A DNA stretch of 64,000 nucleotides from Lepidodermella squamata (GCA_047495785.1 JBLDXI010000003.1:2914001-2978000), one strand, 5' to 3'; shown: positions 1 through 43,335, counted from the stretch's first letter. Program-made: numbers and translations. The notes: generated by a model from the sequence alone, not told the origin.

Positions 1-354
1 GATGGAGTGCCGTATAAGGTTGCATCTTACGATTGTACTGCTAGGTACAAGGGCAGAATCAGCAAGCTGAAATGGGTCTGGGATGGGGAGTTCAATTGCC
101 CGAGCTTATGGCCGGGTCACACCGGCAATTCACGAGGTTATGCCAGCCGAACTGGAGCGATCGAACATGCGATGCAAGATTTCTACAAAGATTTAACGGC
201 TGCGAATGTTCTGACCCAGGAACAGTGGGACCAAATGGCACCTGGGGTTGTGAGACCTGTTACTACGACTGTTTCAGACACTACGAAGGCTATTACACAG
301 GCGACTAGATTGCCGAGAGAGGATATACCTCGAAGAGGAGGAATTATACCGTAA
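1..354 (+). CDS. ALF: Anti-lipopolysaccharide factor (ALF/scygonadin-domain)-like secreted protein, copy 1, 5'-truncated by window edge
   Basis: Frame open from base 1 (DGVPYKVASYDC...). C-x20-C loop C-TARYKGRISKLKWVWDGEFN-C followed by PSLWPGH..G.S...SRTGAIEHAMQDFYKDL....VLTQEQW, matching the ALF layout (C-x20-C-P-x-W...DF...L(I/T)xxE). Paralog of 42616-43125 and 18421-18858. Confidence 0.75.
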   Translation, partial: DGVPYKVASYDCTARYKGRISKLKWVWDGEFNCPSLWPGHTGNSRGYASRTGAIEHAMQDFYKDLTAANVLTQEQWDQMAPGVVRPVTTTVSDTTKAITQATRLPREDIPRRGGIIP

Positions 355-607
355 TTCACTGATGCGAAAATTTGCTTGGTTACTTTCAAAAAACTCATTC
401 TCTTTTTCTTCTTTCCTTCAAAACCATGTCATTGTATCTTTCAATGATGAACTCAAAAAAATGAAATCCGCAATAGGTATCCGCAATGAAAAGATTGAAC
501 TAAGCGTTAGAAAAAACCCAATGGCGTGACATAGTTTTATCAATTTATTATTCGAATAAATTATTCAAGATTTCAACGTTTATCAAAATGACCTTTTCGA
601 AATGTCT

Positions 608-1110
608 CTAGTTGGAGACGCTGACGGACTTGCTGAAGGAGTACGAGCCCTTGTTGGCCTTGCGGCCGCCGAACTTGCCGTGGCCGAACTTGCCGCCCTT
701 GCGGCCGTAGCCGAAGTTCTTGCCGTGCTTGCCGAACTTGCGACCACCGAATCGCTTGTTGTTGCCGAAGCGATTGCCGGAGAACGAGGCGGACCGCGAG
801 TAGGAAACAGACTTGGAGACCGACTTGGAGAAGGATCCGCGGCGCTTGTTCATCTTCTTGCCGTGGCGCTTCTTCATCGGGAAGGCACGTCCCTTGCGGA
901 AAGCCCTCTTGTTCTCGAAGGAGCGGCTCGCCGAGGTGCTCACCTTCTTCTCGTAGTGCCGATGCATTTCCTTCGACTCGACATTCCACACCTTAGCCTC
1001 GGAGTAGGCTGAAAAAGATGATAGGGTTAGGCTATTGACATAATTTTGTAGGTGAATAGTTTACCAAGTCCGAGCAGGACGACAACAGCAATGGCGAGGA
1101 AAGCACGCAT
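608..1110 (-). CDS. Secreted cationic Ser/Gly/Lys/Arg-rich protein, family A copy 1 (148 aa; exons 1110-1065, 1008-608)
   Basis: Exon 1 MRAFLAIAVVVLLGL + phase-1 GT..TTTTCAG intron (56 nt); exon 2 AYSEAKVWNVESKEM...SYSFSKSVSVSN. Seven near-identical copies in the window; upstream TATAAAA and ATCATCAGCC. Confidence 0.9.
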
Positions 1111-1921
1111 GTTTAGAATGAGATGAATAAATAATTGATTAGGAAATGGAAAAGCGAGGGATGGCTGATGATTTTTCTTGTGTTCTTTTGCCACTTTTAT
1201 ATCGTGATATTCGCACTTGTAATTGTATTCTTAATTGGCATAGTTCGAAAAAATAGCCAATTATTTCGATCGGAAATTCGCATCTGAAATTCCAAGCGAG
1301 TATTCCCCATTGATAGTTAGAATATTGAAAATTGTAAAACAAAGTGAAATAATTTAATATTAAGATATCCCGCAAATTTTTCAATTAATAATTCAAAATT
1401 AATATTGCCACTGGATAAAAATATTTGTTGTTGTTGTCAAGAACCTCAGATTACAGATTATACCGTGTTTTAGAATAACTCAACGCCGATTTTACATCGA
1501 ATATCGCAACTTTTTCAAACCAATTTCGGCATGAACTTTACTTGGCACGTATGCTACAGACTCCATCTCCTCGAATTTGAAAATTGTTGTTCTTTTTACT
1601 AACGGCACTACCAGCTGATCGAGTTTGCAAGCCACGAGATTTTCAGCGTTAATTTTGAGATTCTCGGAATTAGGAGACCTCGAGTGGTATGGCACCTTGA
1701 TTTAAAAAAAAAATCGCCATTTGAAACTATGAGGATTCAACTATAATAGATGGCGAAAAAGGCGAATGAATTGCTATTAGCTGAACGTTTATTTCATTTC
1801 ACCAAATCTCAAAAATATGACCAGAAATATCAGACTGCTCATCACAGCTTGGCATGGCAAAATAAATTTAATTTTCTAAGTCTGCCGATCTTGAGCCAAC
1901 ATGCTGACCTAGTCTTGAGGA

Positions 1922-3294
1922 TTAGTAGGTGTAGGCGTCATCTCCATGCGCCGCTTCAGGGTTAATAACGCCGTGCGCCTTGTCACCCTTCTTGCCGCCC
2001 TTCTTTCCAGTTTCTTTACCGCCCTTCTTGCCTTCCTTCTTGCCGGTCTTCTTTTCAGTTTTCTTGCCACCCTTCTTGGCAGCCTTCTTGCCATGGTAGT
2101 CGCTGCTGCTGTTCTTCTTGGCGCTGGCGCTCTTTTCCTTGTAGCTGTGAGCAACTGAGGTCTTCTTGCCGCCCTTCTTTCCTTCCTTCTTGCCACCCTT
2201 CTTGGCGGCCTTCTTGGGGGCGCTGTCCTTCTTGGCGCTGGCGCTCTTCTCTTCTTGGTAGCTGGCAGAGACACCAGCATGGAAGTCGCGGGTGGCACGT
2301 TCAGCCGAGGCGGAGGCGCGTTTGCGGCCGTACTTGGCTCCAGCCTTGCGGGCGTGGGCAGAGTCAGAGACGGAGGTCTTCTTGCTGCTGGCCTTGTACT
2401 TGCGGGCGTTGTGGGAGTCACGGGCGACGGAAGTCGAGGCGCGGCGGTGGTGGGCCTTGTTGCGCTTCGCCTTCTTCGAGGCAGCGGCGGCCGAGGCAAC
2501 GGAATCGCGAGTGGCGTAGTCGGCAGAGTGGGCCTTGCGGGACTTCTTGCCGTGGGCCTTCTTGGCGGTCTTCTTGCGGCTGGCAGTGGTGGCAGCGCCG
2601 TCAGAGTCGAATGCAGCAAAGTCATTGGAGCCAGATTCGAAGCTGAACTTGTTGACGTTGTTGTGGCCCTTGTCGGTGAAGGTCTTCTTCTTGAACTCGA
2701 TCACCTCGCCGGCCTTGTCGCGGGCCTGGTCCTTGTGGAAACCAGCCTTGCGCTTGTGGTCGGCGCGGCCGTGCTTCTTGTTGCGGCTGTGTTTCTGAGC
2801 AGCGGCGGCGGCGCCAGAGCCAGCGTAGGCGTTGTCGTGCTTGGCGAAGGCAGCCGAGTCGCTCTTGCGGACAACGCGGCCGTGGCGCTTGCTGCCAGCC
2901 TTGGACTTTTTGCGGTCGTAGGTGGAATCACGCTTACCGGCCGAGGCGTAGCTGGCCGAGGCGCGTTCGTGGCTGGCCGATCGGGTCTTGATCAGCTTGC
3001 GCTTGTCGCTCGTCTTCTCGTTGTGGGAAGCGTCGGCCTCAGCGTAGTCGGCGGCGGCGAATTCTTGCTCAGCAGAGGCAGACTCGCGGGCGTAGGAGTC
3101 GTGTTGGTCGACAGAGGCGGAGAAGTCGGCCTTCTTGGAGCCTCCTTTCTTCGCACCTTTTCCTTTGCCATAGTCACCACCGGCAGACACTGATTAAAAA
3201 GCATTAAAAATAATAAAAAGATGATGTCGGATATTAAAGAATTACCAGTAGCGGCCAGCAGGACAATCACAGCGAGAGAAAGGCACACGCGCAT
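1922..3294 (-). CDS. Secreted Ala/Ser/Lys-rich low-complexity protein, family B copy 1 (438 aa; exons 3294-3246, 3189-1922)
   Basis: Signal exon MRVCLSLAVIVLLAAT, 56-nt phase-1 intron, then long ORF VSAGGDYGKGKG... with SASA motifs, KKGGKK repeats and C-terminal AYTY; strong GC3 codon bias; paralog at 44421-45676. Confidence 0.88.
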
Positions 3295-3399
3295 TTTAAA
3301 ATTGCTGATTCCAAATCGAGAAAATAATATTTGGATAGTTTTGAATTTTGAAAGAAAATAAGTTTGAAAAAATGATTGGAATAAAAACCAAAGCTAACT

Positions 3400-3560
3400 G
3401 GATGATATTTTTCCCATTTCAAAACCACCATTTATAGCCTGGTTGGTCATATTTCATCTACCTGTTGCGTGTTCGCCTAATGATGAATCGCGTGCTCGAC
3501 CTAATTATTAGCCCACCAGTGGCACCAATATCGCGAGCGAAAACCAGTGTTTTTAAAAAA
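3400..3560 (-). promoter_or_regulatory. Promoter block of family B copy 1 (TATAAAT and ATCAT initiator), homologous to the promoter of family C gene
   Basis: Collinear similarity with 46955-47110 (gatatttttcccattt..aaaccac..tttatagc..tttcatctacctgttgcgtg..atcgcgtg.tcgacctaatta..gcaccaat.tcgcgagcgaaaacca). Confidence 0.7.
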
Positions 3561-5272
3561 ACACCCGAGCGAGCTAATTTGTTTGTCTCGCCATTCACGA
3601 ACGTTTGAAACAAAAACCGAATGGCCAAAATCCAAAATGAAAAGATTTATGTTGCGTCCAGAAAAGTGATGATCATAAAAAAAAACTCGAGTTGAAGACG
3701 AGCGATCAGCTTCAGGATACTCAACGGACGAGACTATCATTTTCTAACTTGAAGAGTAGAGCCGCCTCGGCAATATTCTTGAAGTTTAATGCCGGAACTT
3801 TTAATGGCCTTTGTGTTTTCTCGAGCATTGGTGATAAACTGATGAAAGGTGTTCTCCACTTATAAATTGTCCAACTGAAAATAAAATGCAAACTTGGAAA
3901 TTAGGGCATACACTTGTTTTTGGTATCGAAAAATTCGTTTGCACAAGCCATTGGCATAGAGAACCGATTGAAATTCCTTTCTTTTTCATATTTTCATATT
4001 TCATATACCACAAGAGCCGCTGCAAAATAAGAAAAGGGCCATGAAAAAATGAAAAAAAATGAATTAAACAACTAAAAAAAGTTATCGTAAAAAGAATTTG
4101 GGCACGCTTTTCCGATGCACGTGTATCACGGTTTGATATTCACTTCTTCTCAAAATCAGTCGTTAAAATGTGATCGCTCTATTAAATGTGAGAAAAGCCG
4201 CGGTTTTCTATTCAATTTTTGAATCAGCTGCTCAGTTTTAATTAATTTGTCTGAAAATAGCAACCAAAATAATTTTAATAGTACTGTTCATTATCTGTTA
4301 ACGATTTTTCGAGCGGAGCGAGATTTTTGAGTCCAACAATATTTGATAGGGCGTGCCAAGTGCACACCTACTAAATTTGAGACTCCAGCGCACTAGATTT
4401 CCCCTAAATATGGTTTTTCGAATTTCTTGTCATATTTCGAAATCCGAATATTTCGAATATTTCGGTAGTTTTTCGGTAGTTCTACCGAAAAAGTATACCG
4501 CGCAGAACTACCGCAACATTTTTTTCAAGAATCTGAAAAAATATATACGATAATATATCAATAACTTAACCTAGAATTACATAATTTTGAAGATCAATCA
4601 TAATTTAATCATAATCATTTAACAAAATATCATAATTTAACTCTCAATATCAAAGCAATTTAAATATTCATATATAAGGGCCTATTTGGCCTGGCATTCC
4701 TACATTGCGCATGTATTTGACGATTATCAGTAATTTAACCAGCGTAAAAAATTTATGAATGTGGTCGCATTGCACTTATGCCATCCTTTACCAATATACG
4801 TAACAGAATAGAGCAATAATAATACGCTAAAACAGCTATGAATACTGTATTTATTTATCTATGACAACAACACATCAATTGTGCTGGAACATCCGCTCAG
4901 AGTGGTAAATTGAGGCGACCCTTTTGCATGTTCCGCGACTTGCACGGAAATGAGCCGGCAGTATCTTGTAGAGAATTCAACGGGCTATCAGCCGATATGA
5001 TCATTACCCGCCGGCGATGGTCCGTTCGCGTAACAGACGGGCGCAAAGTTTGCCAACATGTCGCGTATTTCAATTTTTCTCGCGTTTTTCAAGGCTTAAT
5101 TTGGCATGTTCCGCGATTTGCAGGAAAATGAGCCGGCAATATCTTGTGGATAATCCAACGGGCTATCATCCGAAACCTGTAATGCGTGTTATTCCGGGCC
5201 AATTTGCGACCTGTTGTATTGCGGCGCATATGCGATGTAGGAATATGTTTTCGTTGGGAGTAAATGTGGTTA

Positions 5273-5831
5273 CCGTATATTCCGTAATAGCTTCATATAC
5301 CCGTTATTACCGCCCGTCCCGTTTACAATCCCCCTTTTTAAGGCCTTTGAAAAAATAAAGCCTCGCAATTTAACCCAGGACCTAAATTTTAATTCAAGAA
5401 AATCGCACTTAAAAATAATTGCGCGTATATTTTTGAAATTCCATTTCTGAGGCATTTGATGGGCATGTTTGATAGAAAATGGCGAAACATAGCCGAGTGA
5501 GAGAAGTTGAGCAACGAAAATTGCCAAAGTAGCCGTCGATTTCCTAACATTCATGACTTGAAGAAAACCAACATTTTAAAATTTCAATAATTTGCATAAA
5601 AATGGCTGAAAACTCTTCGAAATCGAACGATGAAGTTCTCGATTTTGATGAAAAGCTGTTGACTTTAGTTCAAAAATTATCAATTTATTCTTATTTTTAC
5701 TCAATTTTAACACTTGAAAACTTGCTTTGAAACAATTAAGTCGCATGCTCGCAATTGTAACACGTCCCGTTTACAACCCCCCTTTTTCGAAGCTTTGAAA
5801 TTGCCCCCTGAAGCTATTACGGAAAATACGG
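5273..5831. mobile_element. Tc1/mariner/pogo-type MITE
   Basis: TA-flanked ~23-bp TIR CCGTATATTCCGTAATAGCTTCA / TGAAGCTATTACGGAAAATACGG; internal direct repeat cgtcccgtttacaa.cccc.ttttt. Confidence 0.7.
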
Positions 5832-6285
5832 TATCTTCGATTTTCAATTTTTCCAACTTTAAAGAAATACAAGTTAAATTTTTTTCTTCGGCTTCACTTC
5901 GGAATCGGCTTCACTAGAATCACCAATTTTTTTGTTATCTTACCTAACCGATAGGCCTTCATATTACGCGTATTTTGCGCTATGAGCGGTCAGTTTACGA
6001 ATTACACTTCATCATATAGAGCCGATATCGATTCCAAGTATCGATTTTACAAATCAGTGATTTTTCCAATATCAGCCGTCGTGGACATCAATAATTTTTC
6101 TACGTAGCTTTCTACTTTCTACGTAGCTTTCTACTTTCTACGTAGGGCGCCAGGTAGCTCAAATTAAAAATCCTAGGTTCAGTATCGTAAACAAACAAAA
6201 ACGCCGAAAACGTTTAGTGCTGGAACCTCATTTTTAGATATTTGGACCCTATTTGATAGATAGTGATGTTGAGTTTAATTTGAAG

Positions 6286-9200: not shown

Positions 9201-11920
9201 GACCTTTGCACCCTGAAATGATGTTGACACTATGGCAGGATCGTAAGCTTCCGATCTTTATTATTTATCTATGACCGTTAACATGGTGTTTGGCTAAATT
9301 CTTGTCACCGTGTAATTTTGATGCCAATTAAAATTCAATTAACGAGGAGTCAAACGATCTCAAAAATACGGTGATATTCATCGGGGTTGCAGAGAAAATG
9401 GGCTTCAAAGTTTACCGTTGATAATTGCAAATTACGAAAAATTCGCCCTTAAAAAAGTAGTTTTTTAATTAATAACCCTTCTCACAATAAATTCTCATGT
9501 TATTTTCTTATCATAGACAAATAATAAGAGACTGGACACTCACGCTTATTAAATACTGCCGAAATCAAAAAATTAGTTTTTTATCCGCACACTAACTTTG
9601 TGTTTTAATTGAGTTTTAACGATGCAGAGATAAGGTTTCACGATCTAGTGCAACTTTTCACGCTCTATTTAACCATATAAATTTGGAAGCTGTATCATGA
9701 AAAGTTCCTCAAAAATCAGGGCTTTAAAAAATTTGAGAGCCTGCCTCGCAATTTGACCCATCTCGTATTCCAGAAAGGTACTAATGGGATCGATGCAGAA
9801 TTTTGTGAGCTTTCTTTTGATACCAAAATCATGAGGTGCGTACTCATGATAGAGATAGGAGTAACGAAATATTTAAAAGGCTATTTTTTTATTGCGCGTT
9901 TTGATATGTGCGCCGCCGCGACAAGTGAAAACCGTGATTCACGAACGATTTGGGTTCACGTCATGGTCTACTACAGTAGTTCACGCTGATTTCAAATCTG
10001 AAACCCGTTTTTCAATATCTGTTACCGTTCTCAAGATCTAAGCACAATTGAGTATTCGCACATCACAAATGAAATTGTTCAGGAGAAGCAAAAAACAAAA
10101 TCATAGATTTGCGAAAATATTTCCTTTAGGTATAGCGAATTGCAACACCTCATTCAGCGGTTTTTATGACCTACTAGGGCAATTTGAGTCCTAGATTCCG
10201 AAATTTGCACTATTAAGAGCCCAATTTCCACCGATCTAGCTCAAATTGGATTAAAAAACCACTTAATCAAATTTGCTTTTTCGTTTTTATTAAACTGTGA
10301 AAGCCCAGGTAAATACGCACCTCATGATTTTGGTATCAAAAGAAAGCTCATAAAATTCTGCATCGATCTCATTAGTACCATTCTGGAATACGACATGGGG
10401 CAAATTGCAAGGCAGGCTCTCAAATTTTTTAAAGCCCTGATTTTTGAGGAACTTTTCATGATACAGCTTCAAAATTTATATGGTTGAATAGAGCGTGAGC
10501 TACTGCCGTTTATGGCCACGGCTCGTCCACAGCCGATGAAAACTGTCGTTGCAACGCCAGGATACAGTGAGGGCTGAAATTCGTAAATTTCCTTAAAAAT
10601 GTGGTTAAGGAGGAATTTTAAAATGTAAATTTGAATAATTTCGGCAGTATTGTAAAGGCAAGATGAGTGTCCAGTCTCTTATTATTTGTCTATGTTTCTT
10701 ATATTCGTAGTCGGAATTTTTGGGGTTATCTGAGGTTAGGAATTGAGCTATAGTTATCGAAACCCAACTAGTGCCTCTGCGTCAACCTAAATCGATAAGC
10801 TTTTAGGGCAACACTTTGGCGTTTCCCTCCTGGAGGTCTGAAATTCGAAAATCAAGATCCTCAGCAATCGCCCCTTTTCAACTGAACACACAATTTTAGA
10901 TTTGCTGGAAAATACAGAAAATTCGCCAAACCCCATGTTTCACTTGTTAACGGTTTATAATGACTTTTCTCTCAGGAATTCGTGAGATGTGTACATTGAA
11001 ATGACGCAGTGGCAATGTCCCAACTGCTAAGCAGCGAGCGATCGCAGTTATTGAACGTTAACGGAAAATACTGGGACAACGAAGAAACTGCAATTCATGC
11101 TGCAGCAAAAAGAGGCAATGTTGACATAATTAAACTTCTGGTACGCAGGTTCAATGCCAACGTCAACGCAGCTGGCTTAGATGGTTCGACGCCATTGCAC
11201 GAAGCCGCCTTTTATGTCAAACCTGAAATCGTGGAATTGTTGGCGGGCGAGTTCAAAGCCAACGTGAATGCGGCAGATAGCATCGAAAGAACGCCATTGC
11301 ACGATGCCGTTTCGAGTAGCAAAGCCGACGTTGTGAAACAGCTGGCGCGTGAGTTCAAGGCCGACGTTATTAAGAGTAAATCGAATGGCATCGGGACATT
11401 GCACTCGGCCGCTTTGAGTGGAGAGGTCAAAGTCGTGGAACTGCTGGCTGGCAACGGAGCCAACGTCAATGCGGCTGATAAGTATGGCCTCACGCCACTG
11501 CACTTAGCCATCCCGTATGGCAAGGCTGAAGTCGTGGAACTTCTGGTGGAAAGGTTCAAAGCCGACGTCAACGCGGTGTCACAATATGGCGAGACACCAT
11601 TGCACAGGGCCGCCCAATGTGGAAAAGCTGACATCGTGGACCTGCTAGCGGGCAAGTTTGGAGCCAAGGTCGATGCGACGGATGGTGATGGCAATACTCC
11701 ACTGATGATAGCGGCGTATTGGTCACAAGCTGCTGTTGTCCAGCTTCTTGTCAACAAATTCAAGGCTGATGTTGATACAAAGAACAAGAACCGCCAAACT
11801 GCGCTGGATTTGGCTAAAAACACTCGTGCTGTATCGAATCAAAGCTCCGGTGAACAAGGGCAAATAATCCGAATCCTCTCAGATGTTGTTGCTGTGGAAA
11901 ATCACTTCGGACGAGAATGA
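6286..11920 (+). CDS. NEK/NIMA-like Ser/Thr kinase followed by ankyrin repeats (exons 6286-6498, 6551-6611, 6665-6947, 7004-7148, 7213-7259, 8511-8676, 10976-11920); in-frame TGA at 10997-10999
   Basis: Spliced frame gives GNGGFG, FAIKE, LRHPNIV, MEYCDGGDL, HRDIKPVN, DFGLAK, YAAPE, DVWSFG, RP..DQVLNHRFL. The last exon is in phase with ~7-8 ankyrin repeats (TPLH.A....), but codon 8 of that exon is TGA. Confidence 0.75.
7452..7542 (+). repeat. Degenerate (CCCTAA/CCTAAC)-like microsatellite in kinase intron
   Basis: cctgaacctaaccttcaccctgaaccctatccaaaccccaaaactaaccctaaccctgacttctaaccctaactcc. Confidence 0.5.
9512..10694. mobile_element. Non-autonomous DNA transposon with 8-bp TSD (P- or hAT-type), in kinase-ankyrin intron
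   Basis: 31-bp TIR CATAGACAAATAATAAGAGACTGGACACTCA at both ends; TSD TTTCTTAT (9504-9511, 10695-10702); internal ~185-bp inverted repeat 9658-9842 / 10313-10498. Confidence 0.85.
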
Positions 11921-12580: not shown

Positions 12581-13058
12581 TTAGTTGGAGACACTGACGG
12601 ACTTGCTGAAAGAGTACGAGCCCTTGTTAGCCTTGCGGCCGCCGAACTTGCCGCCCTTGCGGCCGTAGCCGAAGTTCTTGCCGTACTTGCCGAACTTGCG
12701 GCCACCGAATCGCTTGTTCTTGCGGTTGCCGGAGAAGGAGGCGGACCGCGAGTAGGAAACAGACTTGGAGACCGACTTGGAGAAGGATCCGCGGCGCTTG
12801 TTCATCTTCTTGCCGTGGCGCTTCTTCATCGGGAAGGCACGTCCCTTGCGGAAAGCCCTCTTGTTCTCGAAGGAGCGGCTCGCCGAGGTGCTCACCTTCT
12901 TCTCGTAGTGCCGGTGCATTTCCTTCGACTCGACATTCCAGACTTTGGCCTCGGAGTAAGCTGAAATAATAAAATATTTGAAGACGGCAAAATGAATTGG
13001 GAACAAGATTACCAAGTCCGAGCAGGACGACAACAGCGATAGCGAGGAAAGCACGCAT
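12581..13058 (-). CDS. Family A secreted cationic protein, copy 2 (141 aa; exons 13058-13013, 12960-12581)
   Basis: Same two-exon structure, 52-nt intron; shorter G/K/F-rich tail. Confidence 0.9.
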
Positions 13059-17337: not shown

Positions 17338-18131
17338 ATGCGCGTCTGTCTCGCTATCGCCGCTCTCGCCCTCATTTGCATCGGTAAGAAATCGGGTCAA
17401 GTAATAATCAAGGTCAACCTTTTTATTCTCCATCAGCTTATGCCGATGCGACGGTTTACAAGTTCGAGTCGAAAGAGCTGAACCGCCGCTACTCGAAGAA
17501 GACCAGCCTCTCGGTTAGCCGATCGTACGAAAACAACGCAGGTTTCGCCAAGAAGGGTGGCTACGCCCCGAAGAAGCGCCACGGTGGCAAGAAGTTCGGC
17601 CGCAAGATGAACAAGCGCCGCGGATCCTTCTCCAAGTCGGTGTCCAAGTCTGTTTCCTACTCGCGGTCCGCCTCGTTCTCCGGCAACCGCAAGAACAAGC
17701 GATTCGGTGGTCGCAAGTTCGGCAAGCACGGCAAGAACAAGTCGGTCTCCAAGTCTGTTTCTTTCTCCAGGTCTGCCTCGTTCTCGGGTGCTCGTCATGG
17801 AAAGCGCAACAACCGATTCGGTGCTCGCAAATACGGCAAGCACGGCAAGAAGGGCGGCAAGTGGGGCCACAACTTTGGCAACAACTACGGCCACAATTTC
17901 CGCAACAAATGGGGCCACAAGTTCGGAAACAACTACGGCCACAACTTTGGAAACGAGTACGGTCACAATTTCGGAAATGACTACGGCCACAACTTTGGAA
18001 ACGAATACGGCCACAAGTTCGGAAACAAATATGGCCATAATTTCGGAAACAAGTGGGGCCACAATTTCGGCGGTCACAAGGCCAACAAGGGCTCGTACTC
18101 CGTCAGCAAGTCCGTCAGCGTCTCCAACTAA
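17338..18131 (+). CDS. Family A' secreted cationic protein with GHNFGNx(Y/W) octapeptide repeats, copy 1 (246 aa; exons 17338-17383, 17437-18131)
   Basis: Signal exon MRVCLAIAALALICI, 53-nt intron; exon 2 shares the KMNKRRGSFSKSVSKSVSYSRSASFSG core and C-terminus with family A, plus 9 GH-started repeats. Confidence 0.88.
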
Positions 18132-19753: not shown

Positions 19754-20249
19754 ATGCGCGCTTTCCTCGCAATTGCCGTTGTCGTCCTGCTCGGACTTGG
19801 TAATCTAGTTTCCGAATCGATGTCGCCATCATTCCATTATTTCCATTATTTCAGCTTACTCCGAGGCTAAGGTATGGAATGTCGAGTCGAAGGAAATGCA
19901 CCGGCACTACGAGAAGAAGGTGAGCACCTCGGCGAGCCGCTCCTTCGAGAACAAGAGGGCTTTCCGCAAGGGACGTGCCTTCCCGATGAAGAAGCGCCAC
20001 GGCAAGAAGATGAACAAGCGCCGCGGATCCTTCTCCAAGTCGGTCTCCAAGTCTGTTTCCTACTCGCGGTCCGCCTCCTTCTCCGGCAACCGCAAGAACA
20101 AGCGATTCGGTGGTCGCAAGTTCGGCAAGCACGGCAAGAACTTCGGCTACGGCCGCAAGGGCGGCAAGTTCGGACACGGCAAGTTCGGCGGTCGCAATGC
20201 CAACAAGGGCTCGTACTCCTTCAGCAAGTCAGTCAGCGTCTCCAACTAG
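19754..20249 (+). CDS. Family A secreted cationic protein, copy 3 (146 aa; exons 19754-19799, 19855-20249)
   Basis: Same structure; TATAAAA at ~19664 and ATCATCAGCC at 19681. Confidence 0.9.
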
Positions 20250-20740
20250 AGACATTTCGTAAAGGTCATTTTGATAAATGTTGAAATCTTGAATAATTTA
20301 TTCGAATAATAAATAAATTGATAATATGCCACGTTGTTGATCTGTTTAATTTAATTTAATTTCGGAAAGGCCTCAATTAAGTCATTAAGATGTAAGACGT
20401 GCATTTCAAGGATAACAATATGGTATAGTTATGAAAAAAGAAAAAGAAATTCGATGTAACGAATCATGGTATGAAGGCTCTTTTTCGAGGTGTAACTGTT
20501 GGGGCCCGAGCGCGAAACGTGCCCGAACGCGCCCCAACAGTATCACATATTTTTTAAATCACAGTCACTCCATTCCTGATTCTTGCGCCATGTTGAATGT
20601 TTATTTCAAAAATATAACACATATCCAATTAATCCTTATATCCAAGCAAAGCCTGGTTTTTATTTTACCTCAAAATGTGTATAGGTAAAATGAAATTCGC
20701 AGAGATAATCAATGTTGCAGTAAATGTTCTTGTTTTCGAG

Positions 20741-26989: not shown

Positions 26990-27484
26990 ATGCGCGCTTT
27001 CCTCGCTATTGCTGTAGTCGTCCTGCTCGGACTTGGTAATCTTGTTCCCAAATCATTTTCACCATAATTTCTTCATTGTATTATTTCAGCTTACTCCGAG
27101 GCCAAAGTCTGGAATGTCGAGTCGAAGGAAATGCACCGGAACTACGAGAAGAAGGTGAGCACCTCGGCGAGCCGCTCCTTCGAGAACAAGAGGGCTTTCC
27201 GCAAGGGACGTGCCTTCCCGATGAAGAAGCGCCACGGCAAGAAGATGAACAAGCGCCGCGGATCCTTCTCCAAGTCGGTCTCCAAGTCTGTTTCCTACTC
27301 GCGGTCCGCCTCCTTCTCCGGCAACCGCAAGAACAAGCGATTCGGTGGTCGCAAGTTCGGCAAGCACGGCAAGAACTTCGGCTACGGCCGCAAGGGCGGC
27401 AAGTTCGGCCACGGCAAGTTCGGCGGCCGCAAGGCCAACAAGGGCTCGTACTCCTTCAGCAAGTCCGTCAGCGTCTCCAACTAA
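26990..27484 (+). CDS. Family A secreted cationic protein, copy 4 (146 aa; exons 26990-27035, 27090-27484)
   Basis: Same structure; promoter nearly identical to copy 5. Confidence 0.9.
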
Positions 27485-33889: not shown

Positions 33890-34391
33890 ATGCGCGCTTT
33901 CCTCGCTGTCGCTGTTGTCGTCCTGCTCGGCCTTGGTAATCTTGTTCCCAAATCGTTTTCGCCGTCTCTAAATGTTTTAAATTATTTTAGCTTATTCCGA
34001 GGCCAAGGTGTGGAATGTCGAGTCGAAGGAAATGCACCGGCACTACGAGAAGAAGGTGAGCACCTCGGCGAGCCGCTCCTTCGAGAACAAGAGGGCTTTC
34101 CGCAAGGGACGTGCCTTGCCGATGAAGAAGCGCCACGGCAAGAAGATGAACAAGCGCCGCGGATCCTTCTCCAAGTCGGTCTCCAAGTCTGTTTCCTACT
34201 CGCGGTCCGCTTCGTTCTCCGGCAACCGCTTCGGCAAGAACAAGCGATTCGGTGGTCGCAAGTTCGGCAAGCACGGCAAGAACTTCGGCTACGGCCGCAA
34301 GGGCGGCAAGTTCGGCCACGGCAAGTTCGGCGGCCGCAAGGCCAACAAGGGCTCGTACTCCTTCAGCAAGTCCGTCAGCGTCTCCAACTAA
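33890..34391 (+). CDS. Family A secreted cationic protein, copy 5 (148 aa; exons 33890-33935, 33991-34391)
   Basis: Same structure, 55-nt intron. Confidence 0.9.
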
Positions 34392-34753
34392 ATGAAAACG
34401 CAAAAACTTTCTACCGTTGATTAATTCCAAAACTTACGATCGAAAATAAAATAATTTAATCGGTCATTCGTTCTACATTTTTGAAGCTTTTGCTGTGAAG
34501 AGTTGTTTTTTTCTGCCTTTCAAGATAATCGAAATCCTTCTTCGAGGTAAATAGCTTTGGGCCTTGATAGATACGCAAAGAGGAAATTAATGGAATTAGG
34601 GAAATTCGTGGAAATTCGTAGATGTAGGCCCGAAAGCTGAAGAATCCTATTACGACATTCAGCAAATGACATGCATCTACAGGTAAACATGCCCTACTTT
34701 TTATTATTTCATCTCACCAGCCAATATATACCAATAAAATCTAACTCGCCTAA

Positions 34754-35678
34754 GGTGGGTTCACAGACTCGGCGACAGGGCGACACGACAGGGTGGCGAC
34801 GCGACAACTAAAATGTCGCGCGCGATTATCGCGAGGGTGTTCACAGACTCGACGGTGTCGCGTGAGTCGCGCGTGTCGCATCAGCGTCGCTGGCGACTTA
34901 TCGCGAGGGTGTTCACAGACTGGGCGATCTGTCGCGCGCTCTAACAATAGCGTTGCGTAACAGCTGGCGACGTCGAAAACAATGGATGTTGTCGCTTGTC
35001 GCAGCAACTGGCTCGAAAATAGGGGATTTTCAACCTCGCGACGCGACAAGGCGACAAGGTGTGTGATCAAAGTATAGAGGCCGCGGCGATTAATTTTCCT
35101 GATTTTTCAGAACGGGGTAAAAAATGCGGCGAATATTTAGATGCGGCGATTATTCGAGTGCGGTCTTCATTTTCTTTAATGACAGTTTATTCACCAGTAG
35201 ACAGGTGTAACAGGTGCGCCAGAGGGCGGTCTTTACTGTAATCAAGATTTGCAGCTAGCGCAATGAGTTTACATATCCGCTAAGAAATACGGATAATCCG
35301 CCTACTCGGAGTCACCTATGTGTCTCATTGAGGGTGACTGCTAATCGCTGGTAAGTGCGGCGATTATTCGCGCGCGGCCTTTATTATTGCCAAATTGTTG
35401 AAAATGGGGGGTTATTGCGGCGATTACTCGAGTGCGGCCTTCATACTGTAGTTTACGGTACCCAATGAAGAAATGAAGTACTACGACGAGGAGGAATAAA
35501 ATAAGGCTGCTTCTATTACAATTTCTTATAATTTCGCACAATGGATTTGTCGCGCGACAGCGTGTCTCAACCGTGACTATCTATGTGAGTCGCTCGGCTG
35601 TTTCAGCGCGACAAGTGCGCGACAGTCGCGATGTCGCGCGCGACAGTGTCGCCCTGTCGCCGAGTCTGTGAACCCACC
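34754..35678. mobile_element. PIF/Harbinger-like non-autonomous element
   Basis: ~33-bp TIR GGTGGGTTCACAGACTCGGCGACAGGGCGACAC; internal GAGGGTGTTCACAGACT and GCGGCGATTATTCG repeats; TSD not clean. Confidence 0.6.
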
Positions 35679-37272
35679 TTTATACGCTATGTGTATCACT
35701 CTAAAAGCATAACATCTATTGAAGCATAATTTTACAGAAAATAAATACATGCTGGTGGCTATCATCTTCATGACGTTACTCTTCAGCCACGCTTGAAAAT
35801 CATCGCCGCATATCACTCGAATAATGCCTAGTGATTCGGCATTGATTTCGCCTCGTAATAACAATTAGACGAGCAGGCGAGCCGTTTCCTCAAGACGACC
35901 TTGCGCCTTCTCTTGTGCTGCCTTCTTCGCTGCTCTCTCGTTACATCGCGCCTGCATTGCAGCATTCTTTGCTGCTTGCGCGGCATGCATTTTGGCATTT
36001 TCGGCATCCCAATAGGCCTTAGTGGCTTCAAGTAGCCTTGTCGGTGTTTTCCGAGATTGCTCAATTGCCTCCTCACGACCAAGGCCCTTAGCTGCTGCTT
36101 CGGCTGCATTTTTTGCTGCTCTCCTTGCTAACATTGCTTCATGTGATCTTTTTATTTGCGCCGCCAGTTTCTCTTTTTCAGCTTCTTTTTTCATCAGGCG
36201 ATCAGCAGGTGTTTCGCGACAAAAGGCCTCCTCTGCCGCTGCCTTAGCTGCGGCAACTTCGGCCATTGTTGCTGCCTGGCAGCCCTGTCGGCCTTTTCTG
36301 CTTGGCTTTCCGGTTTTCGACTATCTCTGTATCTGCTGACGCCTCCCCTGCGAGAAGCTTCCATAAGGGCTGAGTTCCAATCGTCCGCATTCGCAGCCCA
36401 AACACCAACGAAAGCCTTTAAAATGAAAAGATAAGTGATGGTCAAACTTGATGAAGAAACAAACCACCAGCATAACGACAACCAAAAACCTGTTCATAAT
36501 GACTGTGGGAAGGTATAATATTATCGAAAATTGAGAAGAATGAAATTCCCTGCCGAGGCGATGGCTTTTATCGGCTAAGCGGGCGTGAATAATAGCCATC
36601 TGTACCACTGCTGTTCACGTGGCGTTTCATACCCATAGCGGTTGGCTAGCATTTCATTCTACAACAAGGTGGAAAAAAATAAGTAGGCCATTCATACTGT
36701 TTGGCAAACCAGCTGCGGGTCTAGACGATGCGAACTCAATGTTTAGTTGAATCATTTAAAAAATATTTACTCAATAACGCGTATTACTTATGACTAGTTA
36801 AACCTGAATTACCTGAAAGTCTTACTTTGACGAGGGCCTTCGACGATCTTTCCATATTTCCGAAGTAAACCATTCTGCAAAAGATTCGGAAATATCATCA
36901 ATAGGATCATCACTACTTTCATGAACCCCAGTTTTCGCTCAAGAAAGGCAGTACTACAATTTATTGAGCTGAAATCTGAAATCCTGCTTGGTGTGATCTT
37001 TTTGCACAAATTATGAATCATCACTTTGCAAAAAATACAGCGCTGATTCATAATTATTAGCTCTTGTTCGCACAAAGTGGTTACCACGAAGGACGAAGAA
37101 TCATTTTGATCACGTCAATAAGACAAAGAATCACGTTCTACTGCAAATTTCTTCGTCGAGGTCACATCGAAAACACGTGTCCCAAGGCCCAAGGTGCGGC
37201 GCAAAGTCCTGTTTGCTGCGAAAAAGGCTTCATGGAGACACAGTCATGGCGAGGCCTGTAAGACTTTGAGCG

Positions 37273-40200
37273 TGTCAGGACCACGCGACCCTGTAGTATC
37301 GGCGGTCGAGAAGTTTCCAGAAACTTCCGCGTTCTCGAACCTGCCAGAACCCAGCAAGTTCTCGAACCTTCCAGAAACTTCCGATTCTAGAACATTCCAT
37401 TGTAATATATAAACCCTTGTTTCGCTTATGTTATTTTAATTGTAATATTAACTGTTTCTTTGCTAATAAACGGCAATACTTAGCTTACAGCTTCTGTGTT
37501 TTGCTTCCGCTCTTACACGATATTACAATTCACCCGTAACTGGCTAGCTACCTATTGCCATCCGATTCCGATTCACGTCTGCAATGGAAGCTACCGAACT
37601 CCATGCCCAGTTGGCCGATCTTCAAGGCCAGAACTATGCGATTAACCAGCGACTCAACGCCTTCACCGACCAAATCGCACAACTCTGCACCGCTGTCAAC
37701 GCCTTGCGAGCTGTTGCACCCTCGGTTCAACCCGTTGCTTCGGATCCCGTTGCCCAAGTCCCGGTTACTACGACTCAGCCGAATGCTTTACGGGCGAAGA
37801 TACCTGGTCGGTATGCCGGCGATCGGTCTAAGTTCCGAGCCTTTGTCACGCAATGCCAGATCTACCTACGACTGAATGCAGCCTACTACCCCGATGATTC
37901 TGCAAAGGTCGCGTTCATCTGCACTCTGCTGGACGACTCTGCCCGAGATTGGATGACGCCCTTTGCCGAGACGAACCACGCCATTATGAGCGATTTTGCG
38001 GCGTTCCTGGCAAGTTTCAAGGCGGCCTTCGACGATCCTAATCGCACACGAACAGCCGAGTTAGCGCTTCAACGGCTCAAACAAGGCAACCGCTCAGTTG
38101 CAGTTTACGCTGCCGAGTTTCAGCGCCTGGCTGTCGACACCACCTGGAACGACTCCGCGCTCGCTCACCAGTTCCGGTTCGGTCTATCCGACGAAATCAA
38201 AGATGAGCTGGCCCGTGTTGATTACCCGTCCAACCTGCAAGATCTGATCAACCTGTCGAACAAAATTGACGCCAGGCTCACAGAGCGTAGGTTGGAGAGG
38301 AAGCATCAAGCGATTTTTCCAAGGTCCACGGTGGTTCCTCCCACGATCACCGCTCCTGCCTCATTGCCGCAAGCAGCAACACAGCCGGAGCCAGAGCCAA
38401 TGCAGGTCGACGTTGTTCGCAAACCGTTGACGCAAGCGGAACGAGAATACCGACGCAAGAACGGCCTCTGCATGTACTGCGGTCAACCTGGCCATGTTAT
38501 TCGTACCTGCCCGACACGACCTACCACAGCTCGTGTTAGGAAAATTAACAATATCCAACATGATGTACCTATTGCTGATGATGAAATAAATAATGAAGAA
38601 TCGTACTCGCGCTCCTCTCTTTTTCTGTTGAGGTCTGTTGTCAACGTCCCAAAGGATGACCTTGCTGTCATGGCAATAGCTATGGTCGACTGCGGCGCGG
38701 ACGGCAACTTCATGGACATCCAGTTCGCCAAGGAGCACGACATCCCGCTGATCGAAAAGAAGAAACCAATCCCTGTTGGTGGAATAGATGGCCGATCGCT
38801 CAAATCTGGTCCGATAACTCATCAAACTGCTCCCTTACAGTTCGAAATCTATGGCCACATCGAGACTATTGTATTCGAGCTCATCGATAGTCCTCACTAC
38901 CCAGTCATCCTCGGTATTCCCTGGTTGGAGCTTCACGACCCAACGATCCGATGGTCGGGTAGAACAATCATGTTCAACGCTGCGCATTGCAAGAAGCATT
39001 GCAACGCTGAATTCCAGCATCATTTCGTTGCGGCTGTGAGTCAAGCTACAGCTGCGCCTGTAGACCCGCTCCAAGGTCTACCTTCAAAATACCATGAGTT
39101 TGCTGATGTCTTCAGCGAAAAAGAAGCTGACAAACTACCCCCACATCGGCCATACGATTGTCCGATCGATCTCGAACCTGGAACAATGCCACCATTCGGC
39201 CCGATCTACAGTTTATCAGAAGTTGAGCTGGAAGCATTGAAGAAATACATTTCCGAGAACCTGGAGAAAGGCTTCATCCGTTCATCAAAGTCCTCTGCGG
39301 GATCTCCCATCCTTTTCGTTAAGAAAAAAGACGGCACCCTTCGGCTATGTGTCGACTATCGTGGCCTGAACAAAATCACAAAACGAAACCGGTATCCATT
39401 GCCTTTGATTCCGGAACTCCTGGACCGTTTGCGACATGCTAAGATCTTTACTAAGCTGGACCTCCGCGGCGCTTACAATTTACTCCGGATTAAGGAGGGC
39501 GATGAATGGAAAACCGCGTTCCGTACCAGGTATGGCCTTTTCGAGTACCTGGTTATGCCTTTTGGGTTGACCAATGCCCCGGCGGCGTTCCAGTATTTCA
39601 TGAACGACATATTCCGCGACATGCTGGACATTTGCGTGGTTATCTACCTCGATGATATCCTCATTTTCAGCGAAGATCCCAGCAAACACGAGGAACATGT
39701 CAGAGAAGTGCTTCGACGGCTGAGAGAAAATCGCCTATTCTCCAAACTGTCGAAGTGCGAGTTCGATGTCAAGAAGGTCGAATTTCTCGGATTTCACATT
39801 TCCACGGAAGGCATTGCCATGGACGAGAAGAAAGTGGCCTGTATCCGCGACTGGAAACGTCCAACATCCGTGAAAGACATCCAATGCTTCATGGGCTTTG
39901 CAAACTTCTATCGACGCTTCGTCGCGAATTTTGCCAAAATTGCGCACCCAATCAATCGTCTCCTGAAGAAAAATGCACCTTTTCACTGGGATGACAGCGC
40001 CGAACAAGCTTTCAAAACCCTGAAAGAGAAGTTCACTTCAGCTCCCGTTCTGATTCATCCAGACCCCGATTTGCCGTTCATTGTCGAGACCGACTGTTCA
40101 AATTTCGCACTTGGATGCATTCTCTCTCAAGTCCACTCCGATGGCCGTTTGCACCCTTGTGCTTACTACTCGCGAAGTCTGTCCGACGCCGAGCGGAACT

Positions 40201-42278
40201 ACGATATCCACGACAAGGAACTTTTGGCGGTCAAAGTGGCTTTCGAAGAATGGCGACATTACCTCGAAGGTGCTCGCCACAAAATAACGGTTTACTGCGA
40301 CCACAAAAACCTGGAATACTTCATGAGCCAAAGGAAGATTCTCAGTCAGAGGCAAGCTCGATGGGCGAACTTTTTCTCGCGATTCGATTTCGTTCTTACG
40401 TACCGCCCTGGTAGCAAAGGGGGAAAACCGGACGCCTTGTCCAGAAGACCCGAGTACCGCGGAACTGACAAAAATGACGATCCCGAAGCCTCGAGCGTGC
40501 TAACCCCTGCCCATTTCCAACTGATGGCACTCAAATCGTTTTCGTGGTCTTGCCAATTTTCGGAAGACATCAAGTCAGCTTTGGCCTCCGATTCCTTTGC
40601 AAAGTCCGTTCTTGAATCCTTAAACGGCGAACACTGCGACCCGAAGTATGAACACTTTTCCGAGCAAAACGGCTTGCTGTTGTTCAAGAACTTGATCTAC
40701 GTCCCTGAAAGTCTGCGGCTGAAAGTGTTACAGCTCCGTCATGACGCCAAGGTTGCAGGGCATTTCGGTTTCCGGAAAACTTTGGAGCTTGTCTCTCGCG
40801 ATTATTGGTGGCCGAAGCAACGCCAGTTTGTCTACGAGTTCGTCAAGACTTGCGATACCTGTAAGCGAGCCAAGGCGCCAAGACACCTGCCGTATGGCAA
40901 TCTCGAACCGTTACCAACCCCGGATCGACCATGGTCCTCCATTTCGATGGATTTCATCACCGAGCTTCCTCAATCAAACGGAAATACAGTGATTCTGAAT
41001 GTAGTCGATCGGCTAACGAAAATGGCCCATTTCATTTCGCTTCCCAAACTACCATCAGCAGAAGAAACAGCTTCAGTGTTTCTCAAGGACATTTTCCGAT
41101 TACACGGCGTACCAGATTCGACCGTGACAGACCGCGGCTCGCAATTCGCCTCAAAATTCTGGAAACGATTTTTTGAGCTTCTAGGAACCGATGTCAAACT
41201 CTCAACTGCAAATCACCCGGAAACAGACGGCCAGACGGAGCGTGTCAACCAGGTGCTGGAGCAATACCTTCGTTGTTTCACGAGCTACCAACAAGACGAT
41301 TGGGCCGATCTGCTCCCCATCGCTGAATTCTGCTACAATAATTCGCTGCACGCTTCGACGAACTGCACTCCTTTCCTTGCCAACTATGGTTTCCAGCCCA
41401 AATTCGACCCGTTGACACCAAATTCCAGTGAAGTTCCTCGCGCCGAAACTCGCATCAAGGACCTTTCGGAACTGAAAAACGCCCTCATGACCGAACTGGA
41501 AGCCGCAAAAGAAACGTACAAGAAATACGCCGACCTCAAGCGGCAACCAGGTCCAACTTTTTCCGAAGGCGACCTTGTTTGGCTATCAGCCAAGCATGTT
41601 TCGACGAACCGACCAAGCAAAAAACTTGATTTCAAGCGTCTTGGGCCGTTCAAAGTCGTCGAGAAGATCAGTGAGCTGGTTTACCGACTTCAACTGCCTC
41701 CCAGTCTGAAAATCCATCCGGTGTTTCACATCTCCATGCTAGAGCCATACGTCGAAAACACGATTCCCGGTCGAAAACAACCGCCGCCACCACCAGTCGA
41801 ATCCGAAGAAGGCGACGAATTCGAAGTTGAAGCCATACTCGACTCGAAGGTGGAACGTGGCACCTTGAAGTACCTGGTTGATTGGAAGGGTTATGGCCCA
41901 GAAGAACGAAGTTGGGAGCCGGTTTCAAACCTGAACTGTCCAGACCTGTTGGCCGAGTTCCACGCCAAGTACCCTGACAAACCGAAAGGCACGAATGCGA
42001 CGTCTGGAAGCCGTCGGCTACGACGGGGGGTGATGTCAGGACCACGCGACCCTGTAGTATCGGCGGTCGAGAAGTTTCCAGAAACTTCCGCGTTCTCGAA
42101 CCTGCCAGAACCCAGCAAGTTCTCGAACCTTCCAGAAACTTCCGATTCTAGAACATTCCATTGTAATATATAAACCCTTGTTTCGCTTATGTTATTTTAA
42201 TTGTAATATTAACTGTTTCTTTGCTAATAAACGGCAATACTTAGCTTACAGCTTCTGTGTTTTGCTTCCGCTCTTACA
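37273..42278 (+). mobile_element. Full-length Ty3/gypsy chromovirus (Tf1/sushi-like) LTR retrotransposon
   Basis: 245-bp TG..CA LTRs at 37273-37517 and 42034-42278 that read identical by eye; 5-bp TSD GAGCG; G-rich PPT before the 3' LTR; single uninterrupted ORF. Confidence 0.97.
37584..42173 (+). CDS. gag-pol: Gag-Pol polyprotein (capsid, CCHC knuckle, aspartic protease, RT, RNase H, integrase, chromodomain), 1529 aa
   Basis: CMYCGQPGHVIRTC; MVDCGA; YLDD; ETDCS/DKELLA RNase H; HD..GH..CDTC zinc finger and D,D35E core; GPF; FEVEAILDS..KYLVDWKGYGPEERSWEP chromodomain. Confidence 0.97.
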   Translation: MEATELHAQLADLQGQNYAINQRLNAFTDQIAQLCTAVNALRAVAPSVQPVASDPVAQVPVTTTQPNALRAKIPGRYAGDRSKFRAFVTQCQIYLRLNAAYYPDDSAKVAFICTLLDDSARDWMTPFAETNHAIMSDFAAFLASFKAAFDDPNRTRTAELALQRLKQGNRSVAVYAAEFQRLAVDTTWNDSALAHQFRFGLSDEIKDELARVDYPSNLQDLINLSNKIDARLTERRLERKHQAIFPRSTVVPPTITAPASLPQAATQPEPEPMQVDVVRKPLTQAEREYRRKNGLCMYCGQPGHVIRTCPTRPTTARVRKINNIQHDVPIADDEINNEESYSRSSLFLLRSVVNVPKDDLAVMAIAMVDCGADGNFMDIQFAKEHDIPLIEKKKPIPVGGIDGRSLKSGPITHQTAPLQFEIYGHIETIVFELIDSPHYPVILGIPWLELHDPTIRWSGRTIMFNAAHCKKHCNAEFQHHFVAAVSQATAAPVDPLQGLPSKYHEFADVFSEKEADKLPPHRPYDCPIDLEPGTMPPFGPIYSLSEVELEALKKYISENLEKGFIRSSKSSAGSPILFVKKKDGTLRLCVDYRGLNKITKRNRYPLPLIPELLDRLRHAKIFTKLDLRGAYNLLRIKEGDEWKTAFRTRYGLFEYLVMPFGLTNAPAAFQYFMNDIFRDMLDICVVIYLDDILIFSEDPSKHEEHVREVLRRLRENRLFSKLSKCEFDVKKVEFLGFHISTEGIAMDEKKVACIRDWKRPTSVKDIQCFMGFANFYRRFVANFAKIAHPINRLLKKNAPFHWDDSAEQAFKTLKEKFTSAPVLIHPDPDLPFIVETDCSNFALGCILSQVHSDGRLHPCAYYSRSLSDAERNYDIHDKELLAVKVAFEEWRHYLEGARHKITVYCDHKNLEYFMSQRKILSQRQARWANFFSRFDFVLTYRPGSKGGKPDALSRRPEYRGTDKNDDPEASSVLTPAHFQLMALKSFSWSCQFSEDIKSALASDSFAKSVLESLNGEHCDPKYEHFSEQNGLLLFKNLIYVPESLRLKVLQLRHDAKVAGHFGFRKTLELVSRDYWWPKQRQFVYEFVKTCDTCKRAKAPRHLPYGNLEPLPTPDRPWSSISMDFITELPQSNGNTVILNVVDRLTKMAHFISLPKLPSAEETASVFLKDIFRLHGVPDSTVTDRGSQFASKFWKRFFELLGTDVKLSTANHPETDGQTERVNQVLEQYLRCFTSYQQDDWADLLPIAEFCYNNSLHASTNCTPFLANYGFQPKFDPLTPNSSEVPRAETRIKDLSELKNALMTELEAAKETYKKYADLKRQPGPTFSEGDLVWLSAKHVSTNRPSKKLDFKRLGPFKVVEKISELVYRLQLPPSLKIHPVFHISMLEPYVENTIPGRKQPPPPPVESEEGDEFEVEAILDSKVERGTLKYLVDWKGYGPEERSWEPVSNLNCPDLLAEFHAKYPDKPKGTNATSGSRRLRRGVMSGPRDPVVSAVEKFPETSAFSNLPEPSKFSNLPETSDSRTFHCNI

Positions 42279-42615
42279 GAGCGATAGAAAGCAGCGTGAC
42301 AAGAGGTGTTGCAAAGGGATCGCACGTCAGAATGTTTCACCCCGGCGTCATCATACTAACGATCGATTGACAAATCAGGGTGCGCAATTGAAATGGACTT
42401 TCAAGTGGTTGCATAATATGTAATAAAAGGTTCGTACACTTTCGTGTTGAGGTTTATGACTTCGTGCTACACCCACGCATGACATTAATTTGATACTACA
42501 GGCTAAAGACAACGGAGAGCCTCCAAGTGCTCATCTTCCCTTGTATATAAAATGGCCATTTCCGAGTCAGAATCTATATCGAAAAGTTATTCTTATTTGA
42601 AAACAACTTTGAATC

Positions 42616-43125
42616 ATGTACTTGGCTTTTGCGATTTTCGGCCTGATGTTTTGCCTGATGCCATCGACGCAATCAGCCCCAGTGAATAATCTTCTGCCGT
42701 GCATTCAGCAAAACTGGGTTCAATGTGGGATCGCCCTGGGCTCAGCATTTTTCAAACTTCACCAGTGGTCAGATGGAGTGGCGTACAAGGTCGCATCTTA
42801 CGATTGTACTGCTCGGTACACAGGCAGAATCAGCACGTATCAAAAAGTCTGGGATGGGGAGTTCACCTGTCCGAGTCTTTGGCCGGGTCATTCCGGCAAT
42901 TCACAAGGATACACCAGCCAGACTGGAGCAATCGAACCCGCCATGCAAGATTTTTTCAAGAATCTTACGGCTGCGAATGTTCTGACCCAGGAACAGTGGG
43001 ACCAAATAGCACCTGGGGTTGTTAGACCTGCTACCACGGCTGCTCCTAAGAACGCTATCACCCGTGCAACTTTCAAATTGCCGAAAGAAGACGTTACACC
43101 TCGAAAAGGAGCCTTCATACCATGA
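42616..43125 (+). CDS. ALF: ALF-like secreted protein, copy 3 (169 aa, intronless)
   Basis: Signal peptide; CIQQNWVQC; C-TARYTGRISTYQKVWDGEFT-C-PSLW; TATATAAA at ~42544. Confidence 0.8.
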   Translation: MYLAFAIFGLMFCLMPSTQSAPVNNLLPCIQQNWVQCGIALGSAFFKLHQWSDGVAYKVASYDCTARYTGRISTYQKVWDGEFTCPSLWPGHSGNSQGYTSQTGAIEPAMQDFFKNLTAANVLTQEQWDQIAPGVVRPATTAAPKNAITRATFKLPKEDVTPRKGAFIP

Positions 43126-43335
43126 TTCGTTTCATCGAATTTCTTTTCCTTTTTTCAAACCGATACCATATTGATATTCTTGAGATACACATCTTATATC
43201 TTGACGACTTAATTGCGGCCTTTCCAAAAATTGAATTAAATAAATGTACACCAGAGCATATATTCAGTTGATTTATTATTCGAATAAATTATTCAAGATT
43301 TCAACATTTATCAAAATGACCTTCTCGAAATGTCT

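Follow-up and report, generated by a model that had tools for sequence, protein, structure and literature searches.

How does a protein family that has been described from marine chelicerates and crustaceans alone (PMC6213531, PMC10672452) come to be encoded three times over in the DNA of a gastrotrich, and why should each of the genes lie tail to tail with a gene of an altogether different kind? The question is raised by a stretch of 64,000 nucleotides from Lepidodermella squamata (hereafter the window, meaning this whole stretch of 64 kb), for which it had been predicted, from the sequence alone, that three intronless genes encode proteins resembling anti-lipopolysaccharide factors (ALFs), and that each of them is paired with a gene of a family named A or A'. 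An ORF listing places all three reading frames exactly where they had been predicted to lie, and tblastn with each copy finds exactly three ALF-like copies in the window:

1-354, plus strand: ALF-like copy 1, its 5' end cut by the window start, retaining the part from shortly ahead of the hairpin through the stop codon
18421-18858, minus strand: ALF-like copy 2, complete, from ATG, 145 aa
42616-43125, plus strand: ALF-like copy 3, complete, 169 aa

When aligned, the encoded proteins exhibit 53–76% pairwise amino acid identity, with 76% for copy 1 versus copy 3. A C-x20-C loop is invariant in all three and is followed, in agreement with the predicted P-x-x-W motif, by C-P-x-L-W-P-G-H; in copy 3 the loop cysteines are C64 and C85, which flank the 20-residue hairpin. 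The predicted N-terminal C-x7-C is likewise present in both complete copies (C-I-Q-Q-N-W-V-Q-C, with the cysteines at residues 29 and 37 in copy 3). The Thr/Pro-rich tail that had been ascribed to all copies was recovered for copies 1 and 3, the C-terminal 33 residues of which are rich in Thr, Pro and Lys/Arg; copy 2 has only a short ATPEPST in its place. Putative signal peptides can be read from the sequences, in the form of hydrophobic N-terminal stretches that close with small residues (T-Q-S, A-Q-A).

Are these proteins members of the ALF family? Scored against PF11630 (Anti-LPS-SCYG, ALF/scygonadin), copies 1, 2 and 3 reach 37.7, 27.9 and 31.0 bits, respectively, and are thus all above the Pfam gathering cut-off of 25 bits, so that the profile comparison foreseen along with the original prediction spoke for it. 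A word-based protein search with copy 3 gave no match; relatives emerged only when a profile built from the three domains was searched exhaustively with HMMER, which identified 101 proteins at E≤1e-3, 28 of them at E≤1e-10, with the best match at E 3e-27. Individually, 74 of the 75 aligned family members match PF11630. The 20-residue spacing of the cysteines is identical in 67 of these 75 relatives, and both loop cysteines are at least 90% conserved. The family profile, in turn, matches shrimp ALFPm3 (PDB 2JOB) with E 4e-16 over residues 6–101 of its 102 residues (96 of 102).

The predicted fold is consistent with this assignment. An AlphaFold model of copy 3, built on the 75-member family alignment (mean pLDDT 84; >90 across the domain), comprises in this order a helix (34–49), four strands (55–59, 62–73, 76–84 and 93–99) and two further helices (102–119 and 125–131), and the ALF fold consists of three helices against a four-stranded sheet (PMC6213531). 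The anticipated resemblance to shrimp ALF was found as well: 2JOB is the top Foldseek match of the model in the PDB (E 3.9e-3; TM by target 0.61) and aligns in VIA-align with Z 7.8 and an rmsd of 2.8 over 80 residues, a score that is tied with those of dsRNA-binding domains. In the Atlas, the model finds its best structural match in an ALF cluster of arthropods, at an rmsd of 2.2 over 79 residues, and Atlas feature searches with copy 3 returned only arthropod ALF clusters, below 0.9. Because of the tied structural score, homology rests mainly on the sequence profiles, with which the fold agrees; it is the combination of Pfam scores above the cut-off for all three copies, the profile match to 2JOB and the matching fold that supports the ALF identity.

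Kinship with dsRNA-binding domains, as brought up by the tied VIA-align scores, was considered and rejected: there is no dsrm match in Pfam, and the match to the ALF profile is strong. Such a kinship would also be at odds with the predicted secretion and disulfide bonding of the ALF-like proteins. A few unusual architectures were seen in the wider family. One aligned member also matches a ricin-B lectin domain; P0006 (Adineta steineri, 652 aa) is an F-box-annotated protein with a C-terminal ALF domain, the annotation of which may be fused; and in several long proteins (P0061, P0062, P0066, P0074, P0082, P0089 and P0094) the C-terminal helix region of the profile is matched 4–13 times.

In one structural respect the window copies depart from the classical pattern. 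The mature proteins have four cysteines, as compared with exactly two in authentic ALFs. Classical ALFs are described as having two cysteines, and decapod ALF-related peptides with three or four have been set outside the 'authentic' clade (PMC6213531, Matos et al. 2018). Among the 75 family members in the alignment, 50 have the complete N-terminal cysteine pair, 21–22 have neither of its cysteines, and 3 have just one. Since the two come or go jointly, the C-x7-C probably forms a second disulfide, and in the model of copy 3 this pair is placed at the start of helix 1.

It is then of importance whether the three copies are live genes. For copy 3, the following signals can be assigned:

42544-42552, plus strand: TATA box (sequence reading)
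43283-43288, plus strand: AATAAA signal (sequence reading)
43304, plus strand: likely poly(A) site, after which 15 untemplated A follow in run X3 (a run only guessed to be RNA)

A 416-nt contig of run X2 is identical to 42581-42996 and starts 37 nt downstream of the TATA box, and the upstream flank of copy 3 is uncovered in run X2 but covered in the DNA run X1. Within the copy 3 ORF, there is no splice-like joint. The predicted intronless structure is hence upheld by the continuous reading frame and by the colinearity of the X2 contig with genomic positions 42581-42996; that this genome does splice is evident from the neighbouring A gene, whose signal-peptide exon is followed by an intron of about 50 nt. 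These features fit an unspliced copy 3 mRNA of about 724 nt. A second contig of run X2 has a loose end that reads like the tail of copy 1 (a copy-1-like paralogue), and, as far as contigs rather than reads are concerned, run X2 contains the ALF but not the A gene while run X3 contains both. The ALF-like copies appear to be transcribed, where expression is inferred from the covered parts and one poly(A) end in runs X2 and X3, which are not recorded as RNA.

The ratio dN/dS among the copies is 0.22–0.36, at dS 0.55–1.6, which indicates that they are under purifying selection. One might alternatively regard the copies as decaying or silent duplicates devoid of function, given that one neighbouring ALF copy has indeed decayed (see below) and that copy 3 has lost several of the basic hairpin residues usual in the family. 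We find this scarcely credible, however, in view of (i) the intact ORFs and the conservation of all cysteines in the three copies, (ii) the low dN/dS at such values of dS, and (iii) the transcript-like contigs, which include an exact match to copy 3 as well as a match to a copy-1-like paralogue.

From where, then, do these genes originate? All named close matches are from rotifers, namely Rotaria sordida, R. socialis, R. magnacalcarata, Brachionus calyciflorus, Didymodactylos carnosus, Adineta steineri and A. vaga, with one Brachionus entry automatically named 'Anti-lipopolysaccharide factor', and the other matches that were looked up are metagenome or Logan contigs. The sole arthropod protein identified among the matches, an ALF of Armadillidium nasatum, ranks 75th (E 2.4e-5). 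With every named close relative being a rotifer, the original surmise of a non-arthropod host is very likely correct. In a quick maximum-likelihood tree (128 columns, with only three closely related arthropod sequences, all from isopods, and with weak deep support), the window copies all cluster together (SH-aLRT 92), and their group lies, with weak support, beside a set of metagenome proteins. The rotifer proteins are spread over several other groups of this tree, and the three isopod ALFs lie across a supported branch.

The original prediction had also allowed for a retrocopy or a horizontal acquisition. The lack of introns would be accounted for if the genes stemmed from an arthropod, whether through horizontal transfer or as a processed retrocopy: the coding sequences are intronless here, crustacean ALF genes, including those of shrimp, have three exons and two introns (PMC6213531), and the isopod ALF gene is likewise spliced, extending over 6.6 kb for 119 aa. 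Moreover, an intact LTR retrotransposon is located just upstream of copy 3. Several lines of evidence nevertheless make such an origin very improbable. First, the nearest relatives, from rotifers and metagenomes, also possess the C-x7-C, and those checked are single-exon genes: in all five rotifer and metagenome loci, three of which are in annotated rotifer genomes, the gene range equals the ORF length, and in both of the relative loci where neighbours were compared, the neighbouring genes do have introns. The single-exon state is thus common to the non-arthropod branch and does not point to a recent retroposition. Second, single-exon genes for proteins with four cysteines are widespread among rotifers, both bdelloid and monogonont, which speaks against both variants of the original proposal. 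Third, the isopod ALFs are much more distant from the window copies, and neither the search ranks nor the tree, with its three isopod sequences, places the window genes among arthropod ALFs. Fourth, copy 3 has a TATA box of its own and lacks a poly(A) tract in the genomic DNA. With relatives in rotifers and a single exon in five of five checked genes, the family here looks like an old lineage common to small spiralian animals, and neither a recent retrocopy nor a transfer from arthropods is likely; an ancient retroposition in a common ancestor is conceivable.

The mobile element upstream of copy 3 deserves a description in its own right. It is a Ty3/gypsy-type LTR retrotransposon (37273-42278) whose two LTRs, of 245 bp each, are 100% identical to one another and whose gag-pol ORF of 1529 aa (37584-42173) is uninterrupted. 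Between the end of the element and the start codon of copy 3 lie 338 bp, and its insertion is probably recent.

We turn to the second part of the question, that is, the pairing with genes of families A and A'. The relevant features are:

608-1110 (ORF part 611-991), minus strand: family A gene convergent with copy 1, with signal-peptide exon, short intron and main exon (structure by analogy with the copy at 43336-43835)
17454-18131, plus strand: main exon of the family A' gene convergent with copy 2 (tblastn, ORF listing)
19872-20249, plus strand: main exon of a family A gene with a decayed ALF in its 3' flank (tblastn, ORF listing)
20249-20520, minus strand: remnant of a fourth ALF, comprising the last 18 codons and 3' UTR-like DNA, the gene body being gone
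43336-43835, minus strand: family A gene convergent with copy 3, with signal-peptide exon, intron of about 50 nt and main exon
611-991, 12584-12943, 19872-20246, 27107-27481, 34008-34388, 43339-43719 and 47765-48145: the seven family A genes (tblastn)
17607-18131 and 61805-62305: the two A' genes, with about ten tandem 8-residue Gly/His/Asn/Tyr units (N-F-G-N-x-Y-G-H)

All ALF–A/A' pairs are convergent, with stop-to-stop gaps of about 255, 290 and 210 bp for copies 1, 2 and 3, respectively. The predicted tail-to-tail pairing holds for the ALFs, where three of three genes are paired; viewed from the other side, an intact ALF partner is present for only three of the nine A/A' genes. One more has a decayed partner, so that four of nine have or had one; beside the other five, a search for decayed ALFs gave nothing above noise. 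The remnant at 20249-20520 exhibits 86% identity over 248 nt to 43093-43336 (blastn), and its tblastn match corresponds to the last 18 residues of copy 3. Further, 1-3583 is colinear with 42772-47141, where the ALF (79% identity) is followed by the A gene (91%), a Lys-rich gene (88%) and one more piece; this colinearity and the remnant beside another A gene support the predicted co-duplication of ALF and A. It follows that the three pairs are copies of one duplicated two-gene unit and are not independent, so that the pairing alone cannot show functional coupling.

The two partners have fared differently since. The seven family A proteins are 91–98% identical, and dS is only 0.05–0.10 between A genes, including the two beside copies 1 and 3, as compared with 0.55 between copies 1 and 3 themselves. 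The low dS of the A genes against the high dS of the ALFs indicates that the A genes were homogenised and the ALFs were not; presumably, the array of A genes was homogenised through gene conversion.

An ALF fold need not entail a role in immunity, and it is conceivable that the window proteins serve instead as partners of the basic A/A' proteins in a cuticle, an egg shell or an adhesive, for example in binding or packaging, with the pairing kept by selection. One may cite for this reading that near-neutral ALF domains are encoded beside partners whose net charge is about +33, that the ALF–A pair is still present in three units and traceable as a remnant in a fourth, that the convergent genes are so close that their 3' ends probably overlap, and that the cluster around the ALFs encodes repetitive Ser/Lys/Gly-rich proteins. 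Yet five of the nine A/A' genes lack any ALF trace beside them, the neighbours of the ALF-like genes of rotifers are unrelated to A/A' (five rotifer or metagenome loci), and duplication of a shared unit accounts for the pairing without selection. Hence, we deem a purely structural partnership rather unlikely. As to the neighbours themselves, Pfam identifies no domain in A, A' or the Lys-rich proteins, and an Atlas feature search with the A protein returned nothing. The A' proteins resemble Gly/His-rich antimicrobial peptides of arthropods, so that the cluster might serve defence and not structure.

Three further observations concern the surroundings of the pairs. Only about 30 bp separate the poly(A) site of copy 3 at 43304 from the stop codon at 43336 of the A gene that converges with it, and the 3' ends of both transcripts therefore probably overlap. 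Interspersed among the genes for repetitive secreted proteins are an ankyrin-repeat ORF (11009-11920), which matches Ank_2 with E 4e-56, and two tetraspanin-like ORFs (57707-58237 and 59808-60632) that reach or only just exceed the Pfam cut-off. Finally, runs X4 and X5, which were obtained in 2025 from another organism, contain pieces that, when compared with 42960-43615, match the A gene and the C-terminal portion of the ALF at 90–95% identity; in one X4/X5 contig the A and ALF pieces are joined in a different order, and a related species or strain possibly carries the same pair.

What could the function of the ALF-like proteins be? Their folded domains are near neutral (pI 5.5–7.9), and their hairpins contain five basic and two acidic residues in copy 1, three and one in copy 2, and three and two in copy 3, which amounts to a net charge of +1 to +3; the tails contribute about +3 in copy 1 and about +5 in copy 3. 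The net charge is about +33 for A and about +34 for A'. Strongly active shrimp hairpins have 5–6 basic residues and no acidic ones (PMC6499195), and anionic shrimp ALFs are poor antimicrobials (PMC6499195, PMC6213531). Near-neutral domains with weakly cationic hairpins call for caution regarding an antimicrobial role, and the part originally proposed for these proteins, as the antimicrobial component of a secretion, is a candidate role only. Judged by its residues, the hairpin of copy 1 is the best bactericidal candidate of the three.

Weighing all of this, we consider it likely that the copies encode real, expressed, small secreted proteins with the ALF fold, which belong to a branch of the family found in microscopic non-arthropods and were generated by local duplication of an ALF + A unit. 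According to this proposal, an ancestral unit in which an ALF gene was already convergent with a family A gene would have been duplicated locally to yield the three window copies, after which the A genes would have been homogenised, while the ALFs would have diverged under purifying selection and at least one of them would have been lost. The branch of the ALF/scygonadin family to which they would belong, with members in rotifers, this gastrotrich and many metagenome eukaryotes, is taken to consist of single-exon genes, about two thirds of which would encode the additional cysteine pair where helix 1 begins. By analogy with the known ALFs, the hairpin may bind microbial surface glycolipids such as LPS and thereby serve in defence or in the recognition of microbes. 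If binding is indeed of the LPS type, the proteins would probably be weaker bactericides than the cationic shrimp ALFs, and the basic Thr/Pro tail of copies 1 and 3 might provide extra charge or a glycosylated linker.

It is tempting to speculate one step further, namely that the ALF-like protein and the polycationic A protein constitute a kept two-gene module, convergent with overlapping 3' ends, whose products are secreted together. If this were true, the ALF fold would be responsible for recognition of microbes or glycolipids and the A protein, with its charge of +33, for damaging membranes or forming a matrix, so that the module would represent a split version of the single cationic ALF of crustaceans. 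We regard such a module as a long shot and return to the reading in which the pairs reflect a duplicated unit.

The discovery of these genes thus concerns a structurally distinct variant, and the host range, of a known family and is not that of a new kind of system. An Adineta vaga gene with PF11630 has appeared once, as the 'DUF3254' row of an expression table (PMC12220480), and in the library searched we found, beyond incidental mentions, no papers on ALFs in rotifers, bdelloids, lophotrochozoans or gastrotrichs. The value of the finding is limited in that the rotifer members were already public with automatic ALF or DUF3254 labels and that the function proposed here is a candidate only. What it adds is nonetheless of some consequence for our view of the family. 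The ALF-type family appears as large and diverse, with members in rotifers, a gastrotrich and about 60 further clusters from metagenomes or unnamed assemblies; the origin of the fold would move back at least to the common ancestor of spiralians and arthropods, or else very old transfers must have occurred; a four-cysteine, single-exon subtype of ALF joins the known ones; and the gastrotrichs, a phylum for which we found no paper on such effectors, gain a first candidate immune effector.

In comparison with the ALFs of horseshoe crabs and decapods, as exemplified by ALFPm3 (2JOB), the window copies (i) belong to the same Pfam family and are predicted to share its three helices and four-stranded sheet, (ii) likewise have a 20-residue hairpin between conserved cysteines and a domain of about 100 residues, preceded by an N-terminus that may serve as the signal peptide, and (iii) likewise form a multigene family that arose through local duplication. 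They differ from the arthropod ALFs in their non-arthropod host, in their single exon (as opposed to three) and in the extra N-terminal cysteine pair. Furthermore, the hairpin is followed by C-P-x-L-W-P-G-H in the window copies and by C-P-G-W in shrimp ALFPm3, a conserved W-x-W-D-G gives the hairpin an acidic residue, their net charge is far lower, copies 1 and 3 carry a basic Thr/Pro-rich tail, and the identity to 2JOB is about 16–18%.

The PF11630 proteins of rotifers (Brachionus calyciflorus, Rotaria, Adineta, Didymodactylos) are the closest named relatives (E 1e-23 to 1e-10), with which the window copies share the single-exon gene and, in the case of most of these proteins, the four-cysteine pattern. 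The rotifer proteins nevertheless come from another phylum, are about 25–35% identical, and have neither an A/A' neighbour nor a comparable tail. The decapod ALF-related peptides with three or four cysteines and the scygonadins, finally, also represent ALF-type domains that depart from the two-cysteine rule (PMC6213531), a likeness in the number of cysteines. In scygonadins, however, 17 residues separate the cysteines (PMC6213531), whereas all three window copies have the 20.
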